Positions 3,179 through 49,217 of a stretch of DNA of 59,304 nt are shown here, piece after piece. Below the pieces are notes generated by a model. It saw only the letters and a list, made by a program, of their open reading frames with translations. It ran no database searches and had not been told where the DNA came from. Source of the stretch: Girardia tigrina (taxonomy: Eukaryota); assembly GCA_001938485.1 (NCBI GenBank), contig MQRK01238736.1:101680-160983 (forward strand). The letters are read 5' to 3'. Within the stretch, counting starts at the first letter, position 1; each line of letters opens with the position of its first letter. A program made the translations under genes and the position numbers.

Positions 3179-3643
3179 CTTCCATGGAAGGTTTAAATAT
3201 AATATATTTCCATTTATTTATAGGTAAACTTGGGTTTATAGGTTGAAATTATCATTTACCCAAGTCATCCAGATTAACGAAAGTCTTCTCTTTCAAAAGG
3301 GGTAGTAGAAAAACCACGTCGTGATTGTGATGCCGGCTGCCAAACCAAGTGGCGGCGACCAGCACCTCTTAATTGTGCAGAGGTTCACCAGCGGGAAGGA
3401 AGAGCCGACCGCTTCTCTGTCGCTCGGGATCCAGGCATGTCGAGTGCCCACCGGTCTACAGGTCGCTTTCAATCGGTATTGCAGTTGGTGAGTGCACCGC
3501 CGAACGATGGCGCACGGGATCCGACCGGGTCGTTATGTCGCGGAGCGCTGCGCTTACGCGGGTGGCATATGAATTTGTGATATTAATTTAAAAGTCAAAA
3601 GAAATCGAAAGATTAAAATTGTATTTTTTTAAAAAAGTGTGTT

Positions 3644-3808
3644 TGTAGTGACCTACTCTGGGATATAGGATTTAATTCCTATAATAAAATTAAATTGATT
3701 TATAAATTGATGAAATAAAAAGTTAAATTGTTAGTCTTTTGAAATATATTTTTAGTATTATTCTTGGATTTTTATTTTAAAAAGTGAAGACACTTTCAGT
3801 TTTTCACA
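3644..3808 (+). repeat. 5' LTR (165 bp)
   Basis: TGTAGTGACC...TTTTCACA; differs from the 3' copy only at 3660, 3740 and 3798; contains TATA-like and AATAAA motifs. Confidence 0.96.
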
Positions 3809-3810
3809 AT

Positions 3811-3822
3811 TGGTGTCAGAAG
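3811..3822 (+). other. Primer binding site, tRNA-Leu type
   Basis: TGGTGTCAGAAG, 2 nt after the 5' LTR; its reverse complement CTTCTGACACCA matches the 3' end of metazoan tRNA-Leu plus CCA. Confidence 0.85.
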
Positions 3823-3841
3823 AAAAAAAAGAAAGAAGATT

Positions 3842-5161
3842 ATGCCTCCATTAAGAAAGAAAAGTTCTTCAAAAAGAAATTTCAATCAGTTAATCCAGGA
3901 ATTATTATCCACATATCAAGATCAACAAGATTATTTATCGCAGTTAAACGTAAAATACAATTTTTTATTAAACGCTATGGAAAAACTGCTTTTCGATGTA
4001 CAAAAAAATGTTGAATACTCTTTATTGGCATTGGGAATTTCTAAAACTATAAATAAAGTGAAGCATAACAAGATCAATCAAATAAATCAGTTCAATTCTT
4101 TTTCTCACGTATCAATACCGAAAATTGGTACACTTATACCAAACAGAATTTTTGTGGGTGGACTCACGTCAAATACAACTGAGGACGAATTAAAAATTTT
4201 CTTTTCGAGTTACGGTCCAATTAAATACGCAAATATAATAAATGATCGTACGGTATTATCGAAAAGAAGCTATGGATTTGTGACTTTTGAAAAGGAAGAA
4301 ATTGCTGAAAATCTCACCAAGAATGAATCTGAAACATTGATCTTTAAAGAGAGAAAATTGAACATTAAACAAGCTGTAAGAAATAAATATTTATATCCTC
4401 GACAAGAAATTTCTGGAACAGTTTCATATAATGGACCAGTTCCATATGCTTTGCAAAATGGATCAACTTTATTTCAGGTTCCTGTGCAACATTATTCAGC
4501 TTTAACAGTGATGTCTCCACAATATGCAACTATGATGTTACCTCAATCGACCACAACGATGTATTTACCGCAACCTCAGTACGTTCATCAAATTCCTGCC
4601 GCCGTAATTCCTAACCCTAATTATGCACAGCAAATGGCATCTCTACAAACTAGACCGAAGTCTACTGATTCGTCTACTGCAACACCATGTGTTACATTAA
4701 CTGGATTAACATCAGCTCCTCAATCTCCTTTACAATCTTCTATTAATAATAGTTCCAATAGGACTGCTCAAACATTAAAGGGGGTGGCTACTTCAAAATC
4801 CAAGAATCTTTCTCCTCCTAATGTAACACCTACCACAACACATTTGTTGAGTCCAATGTCCGCAGGACACGAAATTTTACATATTCCTCAAAATGACGTT
4901 AAAACTTTTAACAAAACATTTCAGAACAAGACAGTACAGACCACTTCGACTGAAAACATATCATCCAGAACCCACAAGGACAATTACACACAACACGAAG
5001 AAATTAAAGAAAATCATATTCTTAGCCAAACAAATCTTCATATTTCAAATCAAGAGACGGCTTTCACTACAGACATCAGCAGTTGCATAAAACACGATAA
5101 TCAAAAAGAATATCATCCATTTATAAAAAGCAAAATCAAGTTAACAACATCACTTCCGTAG
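3842..5161 (+). CDS. boule: Boule/DAZ-family RRM protein, intronless copy inside the LTR element (439 aa)
   Basis: aa 93-182 (4118-4387) PKIGTLIPNRIFVGGL...SYGFVTFE...LIFKERKLNI match the Boule RRM signature (GTLIPNRIFVGG, YGFVTF, RKLNI). GPVPYALQNGSTLF (4433-4474) resembles the DAZ-repeat motif PYTYHNGVAYF. A P/Q/Y-rich then S/T-rich tail follows. Confidence 0.9.
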   Translation: MPPLRKKSSSKRNFNQLIQELLSTYQDQQDYLSQLNVKYNFLLNAMEKLLFDVQKNVEYSLLALGISKTINKVKHNKINQINQFNSFSHVSIPKIGTLIPNRIFVGGLTSNTTEDELKIFFSSYGPIKYANIINDRTVLSKRSYGFVTFEKEEIAENLTKNESETLIFKERKLNIKQAVRNKYLYPRQEISGTVSYNGPVPYALQNGSTLFQVPVQHYSALTVMSPQYATMMLPQSTTTMYLPQPQYVHQIPAAVIPNPNYAQQMASLQTRPKSTDSSTATPCVTLTGLTSAPQSPLQSSINNSSNRTAQTLKGVATSKSKNLSPPNVTPTTTHLLSPMSAGHEILHIPQNDVKTFNKTFQNKTVQTTSTENISSRTHKDNYTQHEEIKENHILSQTNLHISNQETAFTTDISSCIKHDNQKEYHPFIKSKIKLTTSLP

Positions 5162-5410
5162 GTCAAATTAAGAACATCAACAAATTGTTAACTGAGGAAA
5201 TCAATGAAACATTTACAAATACTTTCTCTGACTTTGGAGCTTTAGTCAGAGATAACATAACTGGGAGATTCGACGGACCATACAACATTGTGAAAAATCA
5301 AAAAAATCTTTCCTTTTGATCATAAATGGCATCGAAACAATTGTAAACCAGAAACGAATCAGAATTTGTGCAAAAAACCATTTGAGGAAATTGATTTCAC
5401 ACATTTAAAT
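5130..5410 (+). pseudogene. Gypsy integrase C-terminal (GPY/F) remnant, frameshifted
   Basis: An alternate frame reads ALVRDNITGRFDGPYNIVK (GPY at 5275-5283); after a second shift it reads KSFLLIINGIETIVNQKRIR. It lies just upstream of the PPT, where pol would end. Confidence 0.75.
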
Positions 5411-5489
5411 AACGAATTCCGTAGCAAAATCAAATCAAGATTCGAACATAATTTTCAAAGTGTTTGAAACAACGTAACGCTCCACTTAC

Positions 5490-5499
5490 AAAAGGGGGG
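5490..5499 (+). other. Polypurine tract
   Basis: AAAAGGGGGG ending 4 nt before the 3' LTR. Confidence 0.9.
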
Positions 5500-5503
5500 C
5501 TTG

Positions 5504-5668
5504 TGTAGTGACCTACTCTTGGATATAGGATTTAATTCCTATAATAAAATTAAATTGATTTATAAATTGATGAAATAAAAAGTTAAATTGTTAGTCTTTC
5601 GAAATATATTTTTAGTATTATTCTTGGATTTTTATTTTAAAAAGTGAAGACACTTTCGGTTTTTCACA
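5504..5668 (+). repeat. 3' LTR (165 bp)
   Basis: 162/165 identical to 3644-3808; followed by the TSD GTGTT. Confidence 0.96.
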
Positions 5669-8600
5669 GTGTTCACATTCGTATTATTTAAACAAATGTT
5701 TATGCAAACACCAATTAGTTTCTTTTTAATTATAATTTTTGTTTCGGTCGTTTGATCGGAGCACCACAGTGATCGAACTCAATAACTTTGTGACTTCAAA
5801 TATAATATATGTGGTCTCATGTTCTCGTGAAACCAAACATATTAACTTCTATGAACTCAAATTAAATTAAATATAAACAATCAATTCTATCAAAAATTAG
5901 TTCTAGCCCTAAACGCTCAATAATCCGTTTGACCGAACAACTACAATCCGAATTTGAAACTATTAAAAATAAATTTTCAAAAATATCAAATGTTATTTCT
6001 TTTTTAAGAAAAGATATTAAAATAATATTTCAATAAATTTCTATTTATTAAAATATATTTCTATCAATGAAAATGATTTAATTAATTAAAAAAGATTTTA
6101 TGAAATAAATTTATAGAAAAAACATAGAAAATACCTTCGTGACTCTTTCGTCAGAAGATGAATAATTCGGGTTCTTCTAATTCACTGACCAATTTAATAT
6201 TGAACCGTAACTTAGAATGATCCCGGGTTGCTTATTCTTTTTACCACGACGTTTCTAGTTACAAATATACAAAAATTTACCAAAAAAATTGGTGATTTAT
6301 AATGAGAGAAAAAACGAAACGCACAACATTACTTAAAAATAAAAAAATATTGAAAATTATTTTCTCTAATTCTTAAATAATTAATAATTTTACTGAATAC
6401 ATTAGTTAATTCAATGAAGGATAGAAATAAAAAATATAGATAAAAATGTATTGAAAAATAAATGAATAGTATTTGTTAAAATGACAAAAATTGTTAATTT
6501 ATTTATTTATATTTTTAGCCAATTCTTCATTTCTTCGTCGTAAATACATTATATATTTCCCTCTTTGATGTATAGGATCAATTTTGTCGGGCTCGAAACT
6601 ATTTAGTGACGTCAATTCATTGACACTGATCGACTGTTCCTCGAAATTATTTTCAATCTCTTCTGATGTATCAAGATCATCGAGCTCAGCCTAAACTCAA
6701 TTTTTTATCAGAAATAATGTAAAAAATAATTAAAAGCATTAAAATTATTAAAACAATTGTAATGAAAAACTCAAATATACAGTGAAAGCCGCTTATAGTG
6801 ACCACCGCTTAATGTAATTAATTCTCGATTTACGCACTATATTTATAGCAACCTTTAATACATATAGTAGTGATCCTAAAAAATCATCACATTCATTACA
6901 TTAATTTGAATAAAAATAAAAGATAAAAAAAGTGTAGCGCAACGTTGAAAATTCCAATAAAAACGATAAAGATTAACTATCACTGGAAAAATTTATTTTA
7001 ATCATTAAAAATATTTATTTGAGTTTGGTTTAAATAATTGAACATTCACCAAAAACGACACACACAATTTTGGTTTTCTTGTAAAATATATTGAATGTTA
7101 CTCGTAGAATAAATTCGTTGAAAACATTCAATTTGTTCTTTTACTTAATGAATCGCGACTCGCCGTTCCGAATTTCAATCGAAAATTCCTTCCAAGGAAT
7201 TCTGTTCATCGAATTGCATGACGGGCAAGATGGCGGCCCTCGCTTACGAACTCCGATGCCATATTATCGGGGTTAACATTTTTAAAAAAAATTGAAGTAA
7301 TATTCTTTGATACATTCATAAATTTAAAAGCATAAATCAGAAATAGCATAAAATTCATAGATTAACTTTAAATTTTAGTGAAATTGTAGCACCATAATAT
7401 AAATAAGCATAGACGGATTGAGTGCTTTTACTTAAGTAAGAGTAAACTTTTGGTATGAAATCTTGGTGTATTTTCCATTAATGTATCTAAAAAAAATTAT
7501 TTCCGTAGAATATGGCCTCATAGCTCAATAGATTATTGAACTCTTGAGGAAGTTGTAATTAAACAAAGAAAAGTTGGGTACCAATAAAATTGGAGTTTTT
7601 TGCCAAAGTTTTCATTCCCGCTACATTGTCCTATAATTAAATTTGAGATTCTAGGAGGGATTATTATTCCCTTTACCCCCTTGGATTCTCCCTTATATTT
7701 ATGAAGATTTTCTTTAATCTTCAAGCAACATTTTCAACAATTATACAACCTAACATAGCGACTATGTAATCAACTTATGCAATAGCTATTTAAATACTTT
7801 CAACTAATTGAAAGAGTCTTGTTTAAACATTAATGGGTGGATTCAATAATTTTGATCCATTATAGCTCACAAGAGACCCTTTTCCAATAATTTTTAAAAT
7901 TACAGTTTTATATTTAGAAAAGTATTAATAGTGTGTCGAAAGGATGCAACGATAAATATATAAATATCAAAACAATTAGAGTAACAATTTATTCAATATT
8001 ATTTGAAACATTTTCGAAATTTGATTAATGATTTGCAAATATTTAATTAAAGAATAATTTAATTCATTTTAACAAAACCTCATTTTTCTCCAACATAAAA
8101 AGATTTCCTAGATTTCCTTAGAGACAGATCGGTGGTAGTCCAAACAAATTCCTCATTTCTAAGTTCACATAGATGTTCTATGTCTTTAGCCTTTTTACAC
8201 AGCTTGTTCCGAATCGAATATTTCAGAAACCTAAAATTCGTTAGGTCATATTTTTATTTAGGAAAGTTATTTTACTGTGTTTTGTTTAACTGCATCAATC
8301 ACAGTTTTTTTGTTTAACAAAAATTTAGTTTTCGTTGTGTGTAAATTTAAAGTGTAAAGCGAAATTTTGTTTTATAATAAAATTTTTGATTATAGTATCT
8401 TTGAAATGTTCATGATACAAATCTAATTTTTATAATGAAAATTCCCAAATATCAACGACTGATTTTGTATTGAAAGAACTGGATAATAAGTTGTCTAAAA
8501 TGATTTATATCGATAATCCATATTTAGGATAGGCTGATGCATTTTTGTTAAATTTGACAAGAAAATAGTTGAGTTTGTTAAAGTTTTAAATCATTTGAGA

Positions 8601-11233: not shown

Positions 11234-12366
11234 TTAGGTCATTTCACATTGAATACCGGATTTTATTACAAAACCAGAATAAATATTCCACGAAAATGAA
11301 ACCCATTCAATCAATAACACATTCACCATCATTTTCCATGACACCTACCCACTTAGAAACGAGATTTATTATGTCTTGCTTATAAAAATTATGATCTATA
11401 GAGTCAAAAAACTCTTGTATACCGTTTTTTTAATCATCCCATGAACAAATTTTTTTCCTCTTAGATAATGTTGCATATAAGTGAATAAATGAAAATCAGA
11501 TGGTGCAATGTCCGGACTATAGGGTAGATGGGCCAGAATGTCCCATCCACACTCTTGGATTTTTCTGTGAGTGTTCTTTGCCACGTGCGGCCTTGCAATG
11601 TCGTGCAACAAAATCACATGTTTTATATTTGCTATTACCGGACGTTTAATAGAGATTTGTTCTTTCAAGCGTGCCAATTGAGCGCAATAAATATTTGAGG
11701 TAACTGTTTCACCAGGTTTCAGCATTTCAAAATGAATAATCCAATTAATTCTCCACCACGCGCATATCAGAACTTTTTGACCATAAATGTTAGTTTTTGT
11801 TCTGGTCATTGCTCTGAACTTTATGTTGTTTAGTAAGTTGGTATGATACCCACACACCAGCTCTACTGACTTTCCATATTTCTTTAATATGACGGAAAAA
11901 TGTCACTCGATCTATCCATGTTTTATCCGCTATCTCATCTAACGTCTGTTTCGAATCTTCTTCGACTGCAACGTGAAGAGCTTCATCATCACAGCTGATC
12001 TACGGCCTGGCTCGGGTTCATTTTTTAAGCTGAGATTACCTCTTCTAAATTTCGAGAACCATCATTGGCACTTTCTCTCTTCCAACCCTCCAGGATAAAT
12101 CTTATTAATTCTTCTTGCTGCATTCGAAGATTTTTTTCCTTTTCGATATTCATAGAGCATGCAATGTCGCAAATGCTCTTTTGGCACAATTTTTGCTGCC
12201 ATTTTTGTATCGCTTGAGATAATTATTCTGTTCTTCTAAAATATAAAAGAAGAGATGCTAAACTAACAAAAACGTATAAAACAAAAATGTGCGTCTAAAA
12301 TCAGGTGGTCTACAGCTAGTTACATTTAGTACACAAAAATCCGATATCCAATATCAAATGTCCTAA
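11234..12366 (-). mobile_element. Mariner transposon, decayed
   Basis: Imperfect ~30-bp TIRs (TTAGGTCATTTCACATTGAATACCGGATTTT) flanked by TA; transposase remnant 12202 to 11307 with LLHDIARPH and PYSPDIAPSDFHLF (DD34D). Confidence 0.93.
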
Positions 12367-15161: not shown

Positions 15162-15271
15162 TATTTTGGCATAATTGATTTTTATATTATTTATTTTGGT
15201 ATTGCATGACGAATCTCCTTGTACAGTGTTGATTAATTTAATAAACGTTTGTTTATTTATTCATATCAGAT

Positions 15272-15634
15272 TATGGAGAGCGAAAAATACGGAATTCGAG
15301 TCCTTTTGCCACATTACTGGAAAAAGGGCTTCAACGCAGCTGCAGCAGCCCGTGTAATATGTGAAGTAAAAGGCCAAATTACGGTTAGTGTTCGTGTGTC
15401 CCAATTGTGGTTCAAGCGTTTTTCAAGTGATGAAATCAATTTACTTAATTGCCTCTTTCAAGCAATGGCGCATTTTCTCAAAGGGCGGCAGTTCGGTTCA
15501 GTAGAAGAGGTTGAACAAGGGGGCCGTGATTACTTTGCTTCCAAAACGACAGAGTGTTATATCCGTAAATCGAGCAACTGGCTGAAAGATGGTTGAAGAC
15601 CATCGAAAATAAAGGCCTGTATTTCGAAGAATAA
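15272..15634 (+). pseudogene. Internally deleted mariner transposase
   Basis: N-terminal HTH (YWKKGFNAAAAARVICEV...WFKRF) joined directly to the C-terminus (LFQAMAHFLKGRQF...ERWLKTIENKGLYFEE*). Confidence 0.85.
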
Positions 15635-22390: not shown

Positions 22391-23259
22391 CACACACACA
22401 CACATATATATATATATTTGTGTATGTTGGGTATTTGATAAAAATTATTACTTTAACTCTCTTGAGTTTTATAGTAGCGACACTTTCTTTGGATTTAGGT
22501 TCAGAAGGTTCTTCCAACTATTTGTATAATCTAAACAGTTATTCCNNNNNNNNNNNNNNNNNNNNNTCCCTCTCTTGAAGATTGTCAACAAATTCAATCT
22601 CGAAAGAGATTCTTTAAATTTGATTTCTAAAATATTCTCACAAGAGAATTTAGCAATTAACTTCTTGTTAAAATAAATAACGAACGACCAAATCTAGAAA
22701 CCTTTATTGAATAATTCAAATCGGCGAATATACATAGTGGAAAGAATTAACAATGGAGAATCTTCGAGAATCTTTTATTAAATTTTTTTTGTGTAAGTTT
22801 TTCTCTAGAAAAATTTGTGTGCTCTAATGTGATTATGTACGGGTATTTATACCCGATTTTATATAGTAATTATATATAAATTATTTTTTTCTTTTAAATT
22901 ATATTAAAAAATTAAAAATTATTCAAATAATTTATTTAAAAAAAAATTAAATTAAAAATTTATTTTTTATAAATCATATTCCCATTTTTGGGAAATAAAG
23001 TTGAACATGACAAGTGCACAAGCACCTGTCATGTAATATTATAATTAATTTTTGTTTTTCGGTGCGATTGCACCAATTTACTCTTTTTCGGTGCGCTTGC
23101 ACCTGACATTTAACAATGATGCACTTGCACCTAATTAAAAATTTCGGTGCGCTTGCACCAATGAAATACCAATGGCAAAAATGCCATTTCAAAATTTTTT
23201 TTTAAATTATTTTTTCTTAAATGATAATTTTTGAAGGAAGTAAGTTCCTTTTTTTTTAA

Positions 23260-23391
23260 TTAAAATAATAAATAATAATAATAATTATACTTACAATTAA
23301 AATAATCATAAAAAGAATAATAATACTTTTAATAATACTAATAATAAATATATTGATAATATTAATAATAGTAAAATGAATAATAATTAGG

Positions 23392-23443
<52 letters not shown>

Positions 23444-24060
23444 TAATAATAATACTAATATTAATAATAATGATAATCATATAATAATAATGATGATAAC
23501 AATACAAATAATAAAATACTGATAATAATATCAATAATAATAATAATTTAATTATACAAATAATTAATAATAAATGATAATTATACTAATACTACTACTA
23601 ATAATAATACCAATAATACTAATGACAATAATAAAATATAATAATGATAACAAAATTAATTTTTCGATAATAATAATAAATACAAATTAAGTTGATTTTT
23701 TTAATGATAACGCCCATGACGACCTTTTCCCTCCAAATTAGGAGCACCCCCACAATGAATGGGTCCCTGAAGAAGAAGGAAAAATTCGACAAAAGGGAAA
23801 TATAATAATTATAGTAATTTATTTTAATGATAAAAATATTTATAATAATAATTAATTATAAAATGATATTAATTTTAAATAATTAAAGATAGTAATATTA
23901 ATAATAGCGATAATAATGATACTTGTTTTTTTTAAAGTCAAAATAATAATAGTATTATACAAGTAGTAATAATTAATAAAATAATATTATTAAATTTGTT
24001 TTTATGTTTTTTTTAAAAAAAGAAAAATAGTTATAATAATTTTATATAATAATTTTATAT
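23260..24060. repeat. (AAT)n-rich low-complexity tract
   Basis: Pure AAT run at ~23392-23438 within degenerate AAT sequence. Confidence 0.9.
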
Positions 24061-37329: not shown

Positions 37330-38705
37330 CTTGTATACTTGTTTATTATCTGTAAACATTCTTTCCTCGAGTTTGCTTCATTTGATTGTGTTTATTAATA
37401 TTCGTTGTAATCGTAGTCATCATGCATTTCTGCAATATCATATCTTCGATTTTGATGCCTCTGTTGATTTCGTGGGCTATTTGTTCTTTGCCATTCATTT
37501 TTTTCTGGCGTTTTGGTCTCTTTCTTTTAATCTATTCTTGTTCATGTTGCATTGCGTCCTGATATGGCCATTTTTTTGCAATAAGAACACTTTATATTTG
37601 GACAGTTTCTTCTTATGTGTCCTTCTTCGTGGCATGTCCAGCATTTTACAACTCATAACTCTAGTTATTTCTCGGTTTGTATCCATTATTTCTTTGATTA
37701 GTGTGCCTATTTTCGAAATTTCTTTGTTGGTTGCGTTCTATATAGTGTGGTTTACGTTTGCCTACCGTTTTTCATTCATCATGTTTACCTACCGTATTGT
37801 ATGCCGCAACTGTTTCTTCTTTTTCCATTTTGCGTAGTTCATACATATTTGAAACTATATCTTTTATATCCTTTGTTTCGGTAGCTCCTCTCAATTTCAA
37901 TTCTCTTTTCACCTCATAATCGTCAACCATATTCATGCAAACAAGATTGAGCAGCTTTTTCTTAGAAAGTTTGCTTTCTGTTAATATCGTTACTTATTCT
38001 TCGGCTTTTTTGAACGTTTCTTCCGGATCTGAAGATCCCCATCGGAGATTTAAAATATTCTTCATTGTGTCAAGCAGAGATTTTTCTTTTACAAATGCCG
38101 TTTTCAGTTTTTCTTTATACGTATTTCCATCTGCTTCTGAAAATTTTGTGATTGCTGATGAAGTCATGAAGATCGTCACCATCACTAATATTCTATCTTC
38201 TATTATACCCATAATATCCGCATAACGTTCGAAATTTTTTATGAAGTCATCTAATTTCGACTAGTATTCATCGAATTTTTTGTGCTCCATAATGTTCGTT
38301 GTCACACGAGCTGTGGTCGCCATATTAACAATATCACAAGCGAATTCACTATTTGACATTTTTCTTGATCAATATATTTCTGAGTTCATACCAATTATTT
38401 TCAATAAATGAAAATCTGTTAATAAAAATTATTAATTATAAAGAATCTAATTGGTTAAAATTAAATCTAACATTTTTAAAAAAAGAACATTTTAAATTAA
38501 TATATTAAAATTTTAAATTACATTAAAAAATAAATAATACATTAAAAAATTATTTTAAATCTTTTTACTTTAAAATTAAATTAAATTATTTTTAATTAGT
38601 AAGAATCAAAGAAAATACCAATCATCCATCTGTGTAGGAGAGGCACAATCCGAATCAACATTCTACATGCACAATATCAACACACAATTCAAAACATTCT
38701 TCACA
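37330..38705 (-). mobile_element. Truncated LTR retrotransposon: LTR, PBS (TGGCGACC) and decayed gag with two CCHC knuckles
   Basis: LTR-like segment 38705 to 38323 starting TGTGAAGAAT (related repeats at ~9538, ~21809 and ~36633); PBS at 38322; gag homologous to the 40369 ORF; CWTCHEEGHIRRNC plus a second, frameshifted knuckle. Confidence 0.8.
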
Positions 38706-40094: not shown

Positions 40095-41019
40095 GTAAGT
40101 CCAAATTTTGAGGGGTTAATTTAAATTTACATCTCGCCAAAATAATTTATTATTTTTTTTTAATTTAAAGGTAAAAATATTTTAATGTTAATATGCGTAT
40201 CAAATATTTTAAAAAAAAATTAAAAAAGGATATAATAAAACAACTATGAAAAAAATCAAATACGTACTTAAAAATAAAATATGTTTTTAATGTGTTTTTT
40301 AAAAATATTTCAAAAATTTTGGTGTTACAAAAATGTATCCTGATATTGAGGTTGCAACCACTTCTGACATGGCGACTAACGCTGCAATGTATATCTTCAC
40401 GAGTCAACTGTTACCTGAAAAGTACAGGAAAGGCGATAATGAGGAGACATTTATTGAAGAATGTGAAACATTCTTTAATTTTGCAGGAATAGCGAAGGCC
40501 AAACAAGAGACAATAGTCGTTTGTTTGTTGGAGAGAGATCTGAAAGATCGATACAAAGCGGTAGATAAGACAATAGTAGGTTATAAAGAGCGATTGAGAA
40601 AGGCATTCTCTCGAACTTCCTCACTATTCGAAGACCTGGCTGAGGCATGCCGGTACAGGATGAAGGAAGATATACCGAAAGTATTTTTTGAGAAAGTAGA
40701 AAAGCTCGCAGCCAAGATCCTGAAACATGACTTGTCAAAAGAGGCCCTCGCGGAAGCATTATTGTTACATTGTTGTGATAATGTGGACATAAAAAAGGAA
40801 GTGAGACTTAACAAAGTGAAAGGAATAGATGAGATAAAAGAAAAGATAAAGGCAGTACATGACGTCAAAAGTGTGACAGAAGACGTGAATGTAGTAAGAG
40901 ACCAGAGGATGCAAAACAGACGCCGGAGTTACAGAGAAGCAGTAACAGGAAACAGTAAATACGGACAAAATCAGACAGGGGCTGGTAGAAATACTACTGA
41001 ATACGCTCAAGGCATATAA
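40095..41019 (+). mobile_element. Truncated LTR retrotransposon: LTR ending CA at 40369, PBS TGGCGAC, and open gag capsid-like ORF
   Basis: ORF 40333-41019 (LPEKYRKGDNEETFIEECETFF...YKERLRKAF) aligns by eye with the gag at 38290(-); it ends before any zinc knuckle. Confidence 0.78.
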
Positions 41020-44811: not shown

Positions 44812-45829
44812 GCGTTACAAATTACCGCTTTAAACAACTGATGATTCCAACGTTATAAATAAAACACAGTACTATGACATCTTACTCAACCCTAATTTAA
44901 TACGAGAATACGTCAGTTGAACAGGACAGTTTCTTTTATGAAGATGATAAAAAAATGAAGGTGAATGAACAACAAAAAAAGAATGCTCAGGGAGACCATT
45001 GTCAGAAACAACAGACTAGAAAAAGGGCTGGGGAGGAAACAGCTGCATAATGAATATAGGAATTTTTGCATTACAGGAATCGCTAATCTGGCAGAAATCA
45101 TCGTAAATGCAGCATACCAAGTTGTAACGGAGAAATTAAAAATGAAATGCGTCTACACCAGGTGGATTCTTCATCAATTAACAGAAAATTACAAGACCAA
45201 GAGAGTGTAGAAAGCACAACACTTGCTTTAAAATCTGAATAGTTACATTGTAGTTGTCGATGATAAGTGAGTGTAAAGTGATCCCTGTGGGTAAAACAAT
45301 GATTGAGTGAGAGCAGACAGCGACCGGCCAACGATTGCAAACCAGAAATTACACATACTTGTGACCTGTAATTTTTGTGGTGATTTTAGTTTCAAAGTTT
45401 TCGAGAGAAATCAAACCTTTAACGCTGAAAGTTATGTGGATTTCCTGCCGACGATCGGAAAAACCGTTAGAAAAGGACGTCTGCATCTCATGCACGATAA
45501 TACCCGTTCACATACGTCTGTCTGGACGCAGACCCTTTATGAGCGAAATGGAATTACTCTTGTCAAACAAGACATGAATCTCTTGGAACAGTTCGTGTTC
45601 TGAAATCTGAAATTGGACATATGCATAGTCCATTTTTTGAACAAGGATGCCCTAACAAGAGCGCTGGATCGTTCCAAACACCATCTGTAAGAGGCAATTG
45701 ATATTGACGGGAACTATGTATAATTCCGTTTTTGTTTAAAATTACATTTCTGTCTTACTATTGGAGATTATATCATATACCGGTATATATAGAAGAGATT
45801 ATGAAAAACGCTATTTTTATAACACCCTA
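44812..45829 (+). mobile_element. Decayed mariner/Tc1-superfamily element
   Basis: RWILHQLT (WVPHEL-like), LMHDNTRSH and terminal DGNYV*. The 5' region is repeated at 43203-43340 and partly at 43755-43820. Confidence 0.75.
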
Positions 45830-47249: not shown

Positions 47250-48956
47250 TTTATGTAAACACTTTCTAACATTAAAAAATGTCTGAGGAAATTCCTTCCG
47301 TGAAATTTTTTATATTACCATATTTTCCGGTAGATAACGTTATCTATACAAAAATGTTAAATTTTGTCAAAATATGAACTGTGAATCCTGTACTGGTGCT
47401 AACGATGTATACCTCTTAGATATACCACCATGCCTGATATGCGCGTTATCTATACATAAAAAGGGATGCCAAAAACTAAGAGCTGCGCCTTATACAATAG
47501 ATGCGCGTTATATACCGTAAAATACGGTACTTTGGTCTTAATAAATATTTTTCAATTTAAAAAAATTAGAAATATAAAATTTTATCAAACGGAGAAACTC
47601 ATTTCTATGGAAACATTAAACTGTACAATGAAGGTCTAGTGGTTTGTTTTAAAGATTAATAATAATTGTTATACATTACAAGACACCGGCTTTCTTTACA
47701 CATTCTTTACAAATGTGATGTTTTTTTTATTTGTATCACTCTTGTTTACTTGTTTTTTTATTTGGTACGTGTGTTGATCATTGCTGTTGATCATTTGTTT
47801 ATTTATTTCTTTAGTTTTTGTTTTGGGTTGTTGTTGACATTTATTTTTATATTTTTTTTAATTTACACTGAGTCATATTTAACATCCTTGAAGAATATAA
47901 ATAAAAGATAATCATTGCTTACCGTGTAATTTCAAGAAATTATAATAGAACGTTTAAAGCAAAGATAAAAAAAATATTGAAAATAAATCTCCTCCAAAGA
48001 AAGTCAATTATCAATCCTATTCAAAATACCAATTCCTTGCGGAAATCCGAAAATGAAATATTGTCATTAACATTTTTGATTTTGAATTTAAAAGTTTAAT
48101 TTAAAATCAATGACAAAACAATAATTATTATATCAACAGAAATAATTAATCTTGATCATTTCCCGGTTTGGCTGATTAATTAGTGGAGTGACTTCCCAGT
48201 TATGCTTTCGTACCAATCATCAACTATTTTCACAACGTTTGAATAGACTCTTAATCAACCATTGAAATACCTATATCGTACCCGTACTGTAAATATTATT
48301 CCCTACGAATTTGTGAGTAATTGTTGTGGTGATTAAACCGTTAATTGTTGAAAACTAGACTCATTTTTTTGTTTATTTGTTGATTTATTTTTTTAATTCA
48401 TTCTAAACAGGTTCGTCAATCAATTCTTAGTTTGGCTAACCTGGTTAGTCTCATCTTGTACTAGAGTAAAAAAAGTAACAAATACTTTTTTTGCATATAC
48501 GTTATTCGAATTGGTTATTTATTTATTTTTTACAATAATTAAATTAATAATAATTAAATCATAAATAAATAAAAAATTTTCCTAAAAGAAAATATTTTCT
48601 TGCAAATGTTTCAAAAGAAAAAGAATTTCGTGCCAATTTTATTAGAAAAAAATTATATTTCGTTAAAATAAATTTGAACATTTATTCAATACAAAAGTAT
48701 TTTATAATTAATCTTTCATCCACTTTGATTAACGATTGATGTTTAATTTTCATTTAATTACTCAGCAACATAAAAAAAGGATGAAACAAAAATAATTTGG
48801 TTTTCAATTTAAAAAATTGTCCTGTTTTAATGTTCAATAATTATTCTCATCGAAATACCAAAACCGGAAAATTGTTTCCAAATTGATGTCAAAACAAAAA
48901 AGATTATTTATAATAATTATGTAGATAAATAATTTGAATTTGTTAATGATGATTAC

Positions 48957-49052
48957 CTTGCTCAGAATGATTTCCGGGGCCAAATATTCTGGAGTTCCAC
49001 ACAAAGTCCAGGTCCTTCCTTTGACACGTTTGGCGAATCCAAAATCTGTAAC
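48957..49052 (-). CDS. PKA-C: PKA catalytic subunit exon, activation segment (96 bp)
   Basis: AG/GT bounded; [32 protein letters not shown]. Confidence 0.98.
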
Positions 49053-49217
49053 CTGAATAATATGACAGAGTTTCACTAAAATATTTTATGTGTTTAGATT
49101 ATCGTAAAATATCAAATTAATTCATCTATAATACAAATAAGTATTTATTGTTTATAATTTAAAATGTTATATAAAAATTATTTAACGTACCCAAATACTT
49201 ATGTTTTGGGAAGTATT

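Follow-up and report, generated by a model that had tools for sequence, protein, structure and literature searches.

A short LTR retroelement of Girardia tigrina with a predicted Gag-like/Boule fusion

Acutely transforming retroviruses produce gag-onc fusion proteins, and host-gene capture is the classic origin of retroviral oncogenes. Here, we describe an element in a 59,304-nt stretch of DNA from Girardia tigrina (assembly GCA_001938485.1, contig MQRK01238736.1, positions 101,680 to 160,983 of the forward strand; this whole stretch is hereafter called the window). The element is bounded by long terminal repeats (LTRs), and its only open reading frame (ORF) appears to join an N-terminus of its own to the RNA recognition motif (RRM) of the germline RNA-binding protein Boule. 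Quite probably, a non-autonomous LTR element captured a processed Boule messenger RNA (mRNA) in the form of a Gag-like fusion, and the chimera spread as a family. The unit in the window is probably a fairly recent insertion of this non-autonomous, host-gene-transducing family.

The capture of mRNAs in the background of retroviral transduction is treated in PMC4299795, together with crocodilian endogenous retroviruses (ERVs) that captured KIT-ligand and nectin3 mRNAs, exist in several copies and show purifying selection on the captured ORF. In plants, the maize element Bs1 carries transduced host segments in a hybrid ORF with element sequence; this ORF is transcribed and translated, is expressed in reproductive tissue and has a link to reproductive development. 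Bs1 also offers a template-switching precedent for such captures (PMC13317346). The LTR retrotransposons of rice and sorghum carry many captured gene fragments (PMC3726574), and TRIM and LARD elements are small, non-autonomous LTR elements (PMC13317346). Documented cases of host-gene capture come from plants and a few vertebrate ERVs. Among invertebrate LTR elements, clear ones are rare, especially those of a chimera that multiplied with a complete functional domain under constraint.

The element and its fused reading frame

The unit at 3644-5668 is 2,025 bp long and bounded by two LTRs of 165 bp, both starting with TG and ending with CA (3644-3808 and 5504-5668, + strand). They form direct-repeat family D1 at 98% identity, with three mismatches over 165 nt (1.8% divergence). 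The 5' LTR holds putative TATA-like and AATAAA motifs, and its end is also found in a metagenome contig, L002. Directly outside the LTRs, GTGTT can be read on the left (3639-3643, +) and, identically, on the right (5669-5673, +), a 5-bp target-site duplication consistent with the integrase-type insertion claimed in the preliminary description of this DNA. Two nucleotides past the 5' LTR stands a TGG-initiated 12-mer resembling a primer-binding site (PBS), TGGTGTCAGAAG (3811-3822, +), and a polypurine tract (PPT), AAAAGGGGGG (5490-5499, +), is separated from the 3' LTR by the four nucleotides CTTG. The PBS-like site and the PPT/LTR junction are both unique in the window. All the terminal features first described, i.e., the 165-bp TG..CA repeats with their three mismatches, the GTGTT duplication and the PPT, are found in place, and the terminal repeats, target-site duplication and PPT identify the unit as an LTR retrotransposon on structural grounds. 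The tRNA scan of the window gave no tRNA gene, and its Rfam scan was empty.

Relatives without Boule are known from JGI metagenome contigs, namely L001, L006 and L004 (samples 3300033082, 3300013315 and 3300033063, respectively). L001, which encodes the 444-aa protein P0036, opens with the same PBS and ends with a similar purine tract and a TGTAGTG...-type LTR start; because of these shared features, it is taken as the interior of a sister element. The PBS-like site is conserved in L001, L002 and L004: TGGTGTCAGAAG opens L001 and lies within L002, and L004 carries GGTGTCAGAAG. The PPT/LTR junction is conserved in L001 and L004. The sister ORFs follow one plan, comprising an N-terminal helix, a CWYH..C..PC zinc knuckle, a long low-complexity stretch and a GPY-type tail; L004, a more distant relative of the window element, shares it. 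None of the three sister elements holds pol. By themselves, they appear to form a family of non-autonomous but coding LTR elements, with PBS and PPT/LTR junction in common.

One might also suspect that the assembly is at fault, or that direct repeats stand by chance on both sides of a processed pseudogene, as assembly gaps exist elsewhere in the window. Nevertheless, 3639-5673 is free of N, a 36-nt LTR probe matches the two LTRs only in the 59 kb where shuffles lead one to expect 0 matches, the PBS and the PPT/LTR ends are common to the sister elements, and the same junction, leader, PBS and LTR end occur in independently assembled contigs. We find this explanation scarcely credible.

The interior is occupied by a single intact ORF of 439 codons plus stop (3842-5161, +), whose stop-free stretch of 457 codons compares with a maximum of 168 in 1000 shuffles of the element. 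No second ORF of at least 80 aa lies inside the unit. Pfam finds only RRM families on the ORF, and nothing of reverse transcriptase, RNase H, protease or integrase, in agreement with the earlier claim of one uninterrupted 439-codon ORF without reverse transcriptase or RNase H. The element is non-autonomous, in that the unit does not encode the pol enzymes. The exact 439-aa ORF has no database record.

Judged by its matches, this ORF is an in-frame fusion of the element's own N-terminus to Boule from residue 90 on. The element-derived part (aa 1-89; 3842-4108, +) is recognized by DNA matches to the Boule-free contigs L001 and L006, which are 94-95% identical to the window over 3869-4108 and end their identity exactly at 4108; at the protein level, residues 10-89 and the N-terminus of P0036 share 94% identity. 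Directly past this end, at 4109-4118, homology to Boule sets in. The captured, intronless coding sequence extends at least over 4109-4912 (+), as bounded by tblastn against flatworm Boule proteins and the UniParc protein P0001 (UPI000602C7AB). It corresponds to Schistosoma mansoni Boule from about aa 34, so that some 33 N-terminal residues are missing, and it probably lacks a C-terminal part of Boule as well. The preliminary description had presented an intact Boule gene as the cargo; the Boule RRM is borne out, and the ORF turns out to be a fusion to 89 residues of the element instead of Boule alone.

We call aa 1-89 'Gag-like' because they open the first ORF after the PBS. AlphaFold predicts one long helix there (aa 14-63), with a predicted local distance difference test (pLDDT) score of 64-75, and Pfam finds no match on P0036, the sister ORF with the same N-terminus. 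In the sister ORFs, the zinc knuckle directly follows this N-terminus; in the fusion, the well-folded RRM begins at aa 98, and the RRM thus occupies the position of the knuckle. It may also substitute for the knuckle functionally.

Downstream of the cargo, 4913-5232 (+) is either a divergent Boule C-terminus or divergent backbone and holds the 3' junction. Compared with Boule proteins and sister elements, it gives nothing significant, with local scores in the shuffle range. A restart of backbone homology at about 4925 was considered and rejected, since the local scores against L001, L006 and L004 are those of shuffles. The backbone is met again at 5233-5292 (+), outside the ORF and in another frame, as a remnant of the GPY-type tail of the sister ORFs. 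It is matched in tblastn by aa 394-413 of P0036 (20 residues), is similar in DNA to L001 and L004, and is followed by the conserved PPT region.

Identity and origin of the Boule sequence

The RRM fold spans aa 98-179 (4133-4378, +) according to AlphaFold, Pfam and searches with Foldseek and against PDB, with a Pfam RRM_1 core at aa 103-163 (4148-4330, E 3.1e-15). The homologue list, which comprises the best 120 of 170 protein matches, consists nearly entirely of Boule/DAZ family members, with the flatworm ones leading; this and the RRM_1 match uphold the Boule RRM of the preliminary description. Trematode and cestode Boule proteins head the list, with 56-59% identity around the RRM and E values down to 1e-49. 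The closest among the matches listed is P0001, which is also the only one of them to match the fast-evolving part after the RRM, with 57% identity over 142 aa. In BLASTP, the alignment with the S. mansoni boule-related protein starts at its residue 34 and has 47% identity over 224 aa, and the similarity to flatworm Boule proteins runs on for 60-190 aa beyond the RRM. The cargo and P0001 point to Platyhelminthes, although no named protein came near identity with any ORF of the window. All 36 columns that are near-invariant across 40 aligned proteins are kept in the cargo. By these conserved RRM residues and its best matches, the cargo belongs to the Boule/DAZ family. Pfam scores no DAZ motif in it, and likewise none in genuine Boule proteins of invertebrates.

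With an alignment of 40 rows, AlphaFold gives the RRM as beta-alpha-beta-beta-alpha-beta with a pLDDT mostly of 88-97, and leaves everything outside the N-terminal helix and the RRM disordered. Foldseek and PDB sequence searches return RRMs generally, DAZL having the highest identity (36-37%) and the longest match in both. Telling Boule from other RRMs by fold is unsupported, as the RRMs returned are generic ones including DAZL, and the Boule identity is, therefore, drawn from the homologue list rather than from these searches.

The S. mansoni boule-related protein was mapped onto its own gene (L003), which has introns after residues 1, 54, 85, 104, 130 and 166. The cargo runs unbroken across five of these positions (aa 54, 85, 104, 130 and 166), which indicates an origin from a processed mRNA, and the earlier proposal that a spliced boule mRNA was captured gains from this alignment. 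P0001 has short extra pieces at two of these intron positions and misses one exon's worth of sequence. This looks like an imperfect gene model, which would fit an intron-bearing gene in the cargo's closest listed relative.

The 5' junction lies in the middle of S. mansoni exon 2, at no exon border, and the sister-element sequence shows no GT, as a splice donor would require, where the homology breaks off. For these two reasons, splice-mediated capture was rejected as unsupported, and non-homologous template switching is the more likely route. The same junction bears on another possibility: an LTR element located beside boule could give a spliced hybrid RNA by read-through, of which the metagenome contigs would be assemblies. 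These contigs could indeed be transcript assemblies, and P0126, a protein sharing the N-terminus of the element, is known as protein only, with no DNA on record. Set against this, the 5' junction is off the exon border by the S. mansoni gene structure. The window, moreover, is genomic DNA, in which both LTRs, the PPT and the target-site duplication surround an intronless cargo, so that read-through is contradicted for the window copy. We hold this explanation to be highly improbable.

Copies, constraint and competing explanations

When P0036 was queried against 1.84 billion representative proteins, 10 matches were obtained. One of these, P0123, runs from the LTR end over the PBS, the N-terminus and the same junction into the Boule RRM. 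The contig that encodes it, L002 (JGI sample 3300081718), matches window 3754-4835 at 93.8% identity and keeps the LTR end and PBS, and a further contig, L005 (JGI sample 3300033082), is 95.9% identical to window 3824-4670. The junction is identical in the window copy, L002 and L005, that is, in three independent assemblies, which argues for one capture followed by copying. The mobile multi-copy family suggested by the preliminary description is in keeping with this recurrence of the junction at 94-96% identity. Private differences are star-like, with 19, 20 and 18 in the 848 columns shared by the three copies, and when set against the mere 1.8% divergence of the LTR pair, they indicate that the family is older than the insertion in the window. 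L002 and L005 have one frameshifting indel each in the parts covered, and the window copy alone is open throughout.

The private substitutions of the three copies were counted in the window frame, skipping gapped codons. The RRM region has 8 synonymous and 4 non-synonymous changes (ratio of non-synonymous to synonymous rates, dN/dS, ~0.14; one-sided p ~0.001), and the N-terminal part has 8 and 10, respectively (dN/dS ~0.30; one-sided p ~0.013). The tail after the RRM, with 6 and 17 (dN/dS ~0.89, not significant), looks neutrally evolving by these counts. Pairwise Nei-Gojobori values agree with the private-change counts, and no stop-creating substitution is seen in any copy over the 848 shared columns. 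Constraint on the RRM and the N-terminus within the replicating lineage, with inserted copies decaying afterwards, may account for this pattern, although we would give it less than an even chance. The openness of the window ORF is, on its own, weak evidence for selection.

The following course of events probably accounts best for these results. An ancestral, short, pol-less element, with an ORF on the sister plan, from N-terminal helix and CWYH-type zinc knuckle through low complexity to a GPY-type tail, would have taken up part of a spliced Boule mRNA of the host, behind its own N-terminal coding part and ahead of its 3' tail, most likely by a reverse transcriptase switching template between co-packaged RNAs. 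The product is an LTR-driven in-frame fusion, in which 89 Gag-like residues precede Boule from about residue 34 with its RRM complete. This chimera was then copied repeatedly, to judge by the three assemblies with one junction, and the enzymes would have been supplied by an autonomous relative, a source suggested by the lack of pol together with the clean 5-bp target duplication. Selection would have preserved the RRM and the N-terminal part while the chimera spread, and single copies would have decayed once inserted. The fusion could act as a Gag-like, RNA-binding protein proper to the family, in which a domain of germline RNA binding takes the place of the lost knuckle. That the fusion has a function at all is a plausible but tentative proposition, read from the sequence comparisons above.

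Several points weigh against this account. Three copies only are known, two of them being short metagenome contigs, each frameshifted and possibly a transcript assembly. L005 has neither PBS nor LTR, and carries 205 nt of unrelated, GC-richer sequence (L005 1-205) upstream of the leader; L005 represents a copy truncated at its 5' end or else a transcript started at a different promoter. The 5' junction sits within an exon, as said, and the 3' junction is placed only to within 4913-5232. The selection counts are small and come from three sequences, and transitions make up 39 of the 57 changes, a bias that the counting ignores and which inflates the synonymous excess. In simulations, the ORF is still open after 30 random substitutions in 31% of cases, so youth alone could explain its openness. 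Self-binding through GUU-type motifs, as bound by DAZL (PDB 2xs7), was considered and set aside; these motifs are not enriched on the sense strand of the element (12/kb, vs. 17/kb in the window).

The autonomous partner is a further point of this kind. An autonomous element with the same LTR and PBS, which the preliminary description recommended looking for, was found neither in the window nor in the public protein, metagenome, viral and prokaryote-genome collections scanned. No pol is present among the 10 matches of the P0036 search, nor around the distant matches P0130 and P0131, in which the CWYH..C..PC knuckle is also present, there with DUF7041. The protein-based metagenome scan gave no relative of the element, and the PPT/LTR-junction pattern had 0 matches in metagenome, viral and prokaryote-genome contigs. 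The closest relatives of the backbone are short pol-less elements, not an autonomous one. As neither the element nor any relative recovered holds pol, there is no reverse transcriptase for superfamily placement; the GPY-type tail presumably hints at a Ty3/Gypsy or retrovirus-like integrase.

Part of this evidence can be read in another way, the capture and the family being real, with the Boule part as a neutral passenger, useless to element and host, and the window copy open since it is young. Frameshifts in two of the three copies, the dN/dS of ~0.9 after the RRM, the survival of the 439-codon frame in nearly a third of the simulations (the figure given above), and a Boule sequence devoid of its N-terminus, and probably of its C-terminus, would all suit a passenger. 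The synonymous excess in the RRM (8 vs. 4) and in the N-terminal part, the absence of stop-creating substitutions from every copy and the retention of all 36 near-invariant Boule columns do not. This is a possibility to be taken seriously, if short of an even one. Where the preliminary description left the open ORF to 'selection or just youth', each side, thus, keeps a part: the synonymous excess in the RRM and N-terminus speaks for selection, and the neutral tail, the two frameshifted copies and the simulated openness speak for youth.

Alternatively, the LTR-flanked fusion could be a domesticated retrogene at one or a few fixed host loci, the contigs representing orthologues or paralogues in related species. 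Purifying selection on the RRM, the origin of the contigs from different samples, and the non-LTR sequence directly upstream of the L005 leader, as with a promoter of its own, would fit. In the window copy, however, the cis signals are intact, the LTRs are nearly identical and a target duplication is present; L002 retains the LTR end and PBS, and two of the three copies are frameshifted. In addition, L001 without Boule and L005 with Boule come from one sample (3300033082), as a mixed transposon family predicts. A retrogene is, therefore, improbable in our view, and the capture of Boule by a mobile family is preferred.

This family may have a second cargo. P0126 (UniParc UPI000608E5E5, 704 aa) begins with the N-terminus of the element, at 72-81% identity. 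The shared part breaks off at most about 5 residues from the Boule junction point and gives way to a homeobox protein of the Cut-like type (Pfam CUT, E 4.9e-30), with homologues among Cut-like proteins of many phyla. If P0126 is real, two different nucleic-acid-binding host proteins were taken up at nearly one position. One could then imagine a modular lineage of small flatworm LTR elements, built as 'Gag N-terminus + borrowed nucleic-acid-binding domain', in which the knuckle is swapped for a Boule RRM or, in a sister lineage represented by P0126, for a Cut homeobox protein at nearly that point, and selection keeps the domain; we rate this scheme as unlikely. As a part of the same doubtful scheme, the fusion might serve the germline expression or RNA handling of the element, or perturb host Boule.

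Surroundings and comparison with described systems

The window has a GC content of 26%. Shortly upstream of the element, 3276-3570 shows a PPT-like tract (..CAAAAGGGG), 78% like the PPT region of the element, and, after it, a stretch clearly richer in GC than its surroundings. This could be what is left of an older LTR belonging to another element, with the Boule element having inserted into it or at its side. The GC-richer stretch was tried as a related LTR and dropped, as nothing in the window, the other loci compared, Pfam or Rfam matched it. A 228-aa ORF at 40333-41019 (+) has its matches among metagenome proteins only; it shares 93% identity with the N-terminal part of P0132, a 381-aa protein of this kind with CCHC zinc knuckles further on, and is the gag of a different retroelement; a shorter ORF at 37997-38260 (-) is Gag-like by eye only, with no Pfam match. 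Mariner/Mos1-type transposase pieces are found at 11399-11902 (-) and 15237-15593 (+) (Pfam Transposase_1, HTH_48), and by eye only, with no Pfam match, at 45307-45600 (+).

Direct-repeat pairs, 80-86% identical, are located at 19868-20201/21978-22311, 26218-26315/36955-37052 and 43213-43306/44810-44903. The first of these has a spacing of 2,110 bp and could represent the old LTRs of another small element. Long AT-rich, TAA/ATA trinucleotide-like simple repeats fill 23237-23700, where the ORFs are low-complexity artefacts. The sole clear host-gene piece seen in the window is a protein kinase exon at 48837-49085 (-; Pfam Pkinase), with a motif typical of the catalytic subunit of cAMP-dependent kinase.

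Boule is a regulator of meiosis and gamete formation, and the cargo would, for this reason, be active in the very tissue in which a transposon has to work if it is to be passed on. Should germ cells express the fusion, it would constitute a natural recruitment of a germline RNA-binding module by a mobile element, might interfere dominantly with host Boule, and would provide a dated series for the decay or persistence of transduced genes. If the Boule part is a passenger only, the locus still offers a clean, well-delimited transduction in an animal LTR element. Full-text literature searches returned no Boule-carrying retroelement and no comparable flatworm case, in line with the preliminary description, to whose author no such element was known. 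The process, gene transduction by retroelements, is known; the Boule cargo and the architecture appear undescribed.

Compared with the host Boule/DAZ-family proteins of flatworms (PMC3158854, PMC4858218), the cargo has the same single RRM, all near-invariant residues and similarity past the RRM. Unlike them, it lacks the first ~33 residues, has a foreign N-terminus of 89 residues and a neutral tail, and is intronless and located inside a mobile element. With the plant capture elements, TRIM and LARD, the Boule element shares its small size, the dependence on a helper and the carriage of host sequence. Nevertheless, plant captures mostly come without a maintained domain and classical TRIM and LARD elements are non-coding, whereas the Boule family keeps one ORF. 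The crocodilian ERVs are full-size, and their cargo is a separate ORF or replaces env; the Boule element, in contrast, is 2 kb long and pol-less, with its cargo joined to the Gag-like N-terminus in place of the knuckle region.

Bs1 is, like the Boule element, a non-autonomous LTR element with host segments and element sequence in a hybrid ORF. It holds, however, fragments of three genes and no complete functional domain set, while the Boule element holds one gene with a complete RRM in an animal host and is, unlike Bs1, documented by three copies with one junction. The gag-onc retroviruses resemble it in several respects: a spliced host mRNA lies between LTRs, replication genes are lost and cis signals kept, the host part is fused in frame to an N-terminal part of Gag, and spread depends on a helper, which for the Boule element is presumed. 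The differences are equally clear, as the Boule element is endogenous, invertebrate and retrotransposon-like, with no env and no sign of infection, and its cargo is an RNA-binding protein of the germline instead of a regulator of growth, persisting in a multi-copy family of the germline.

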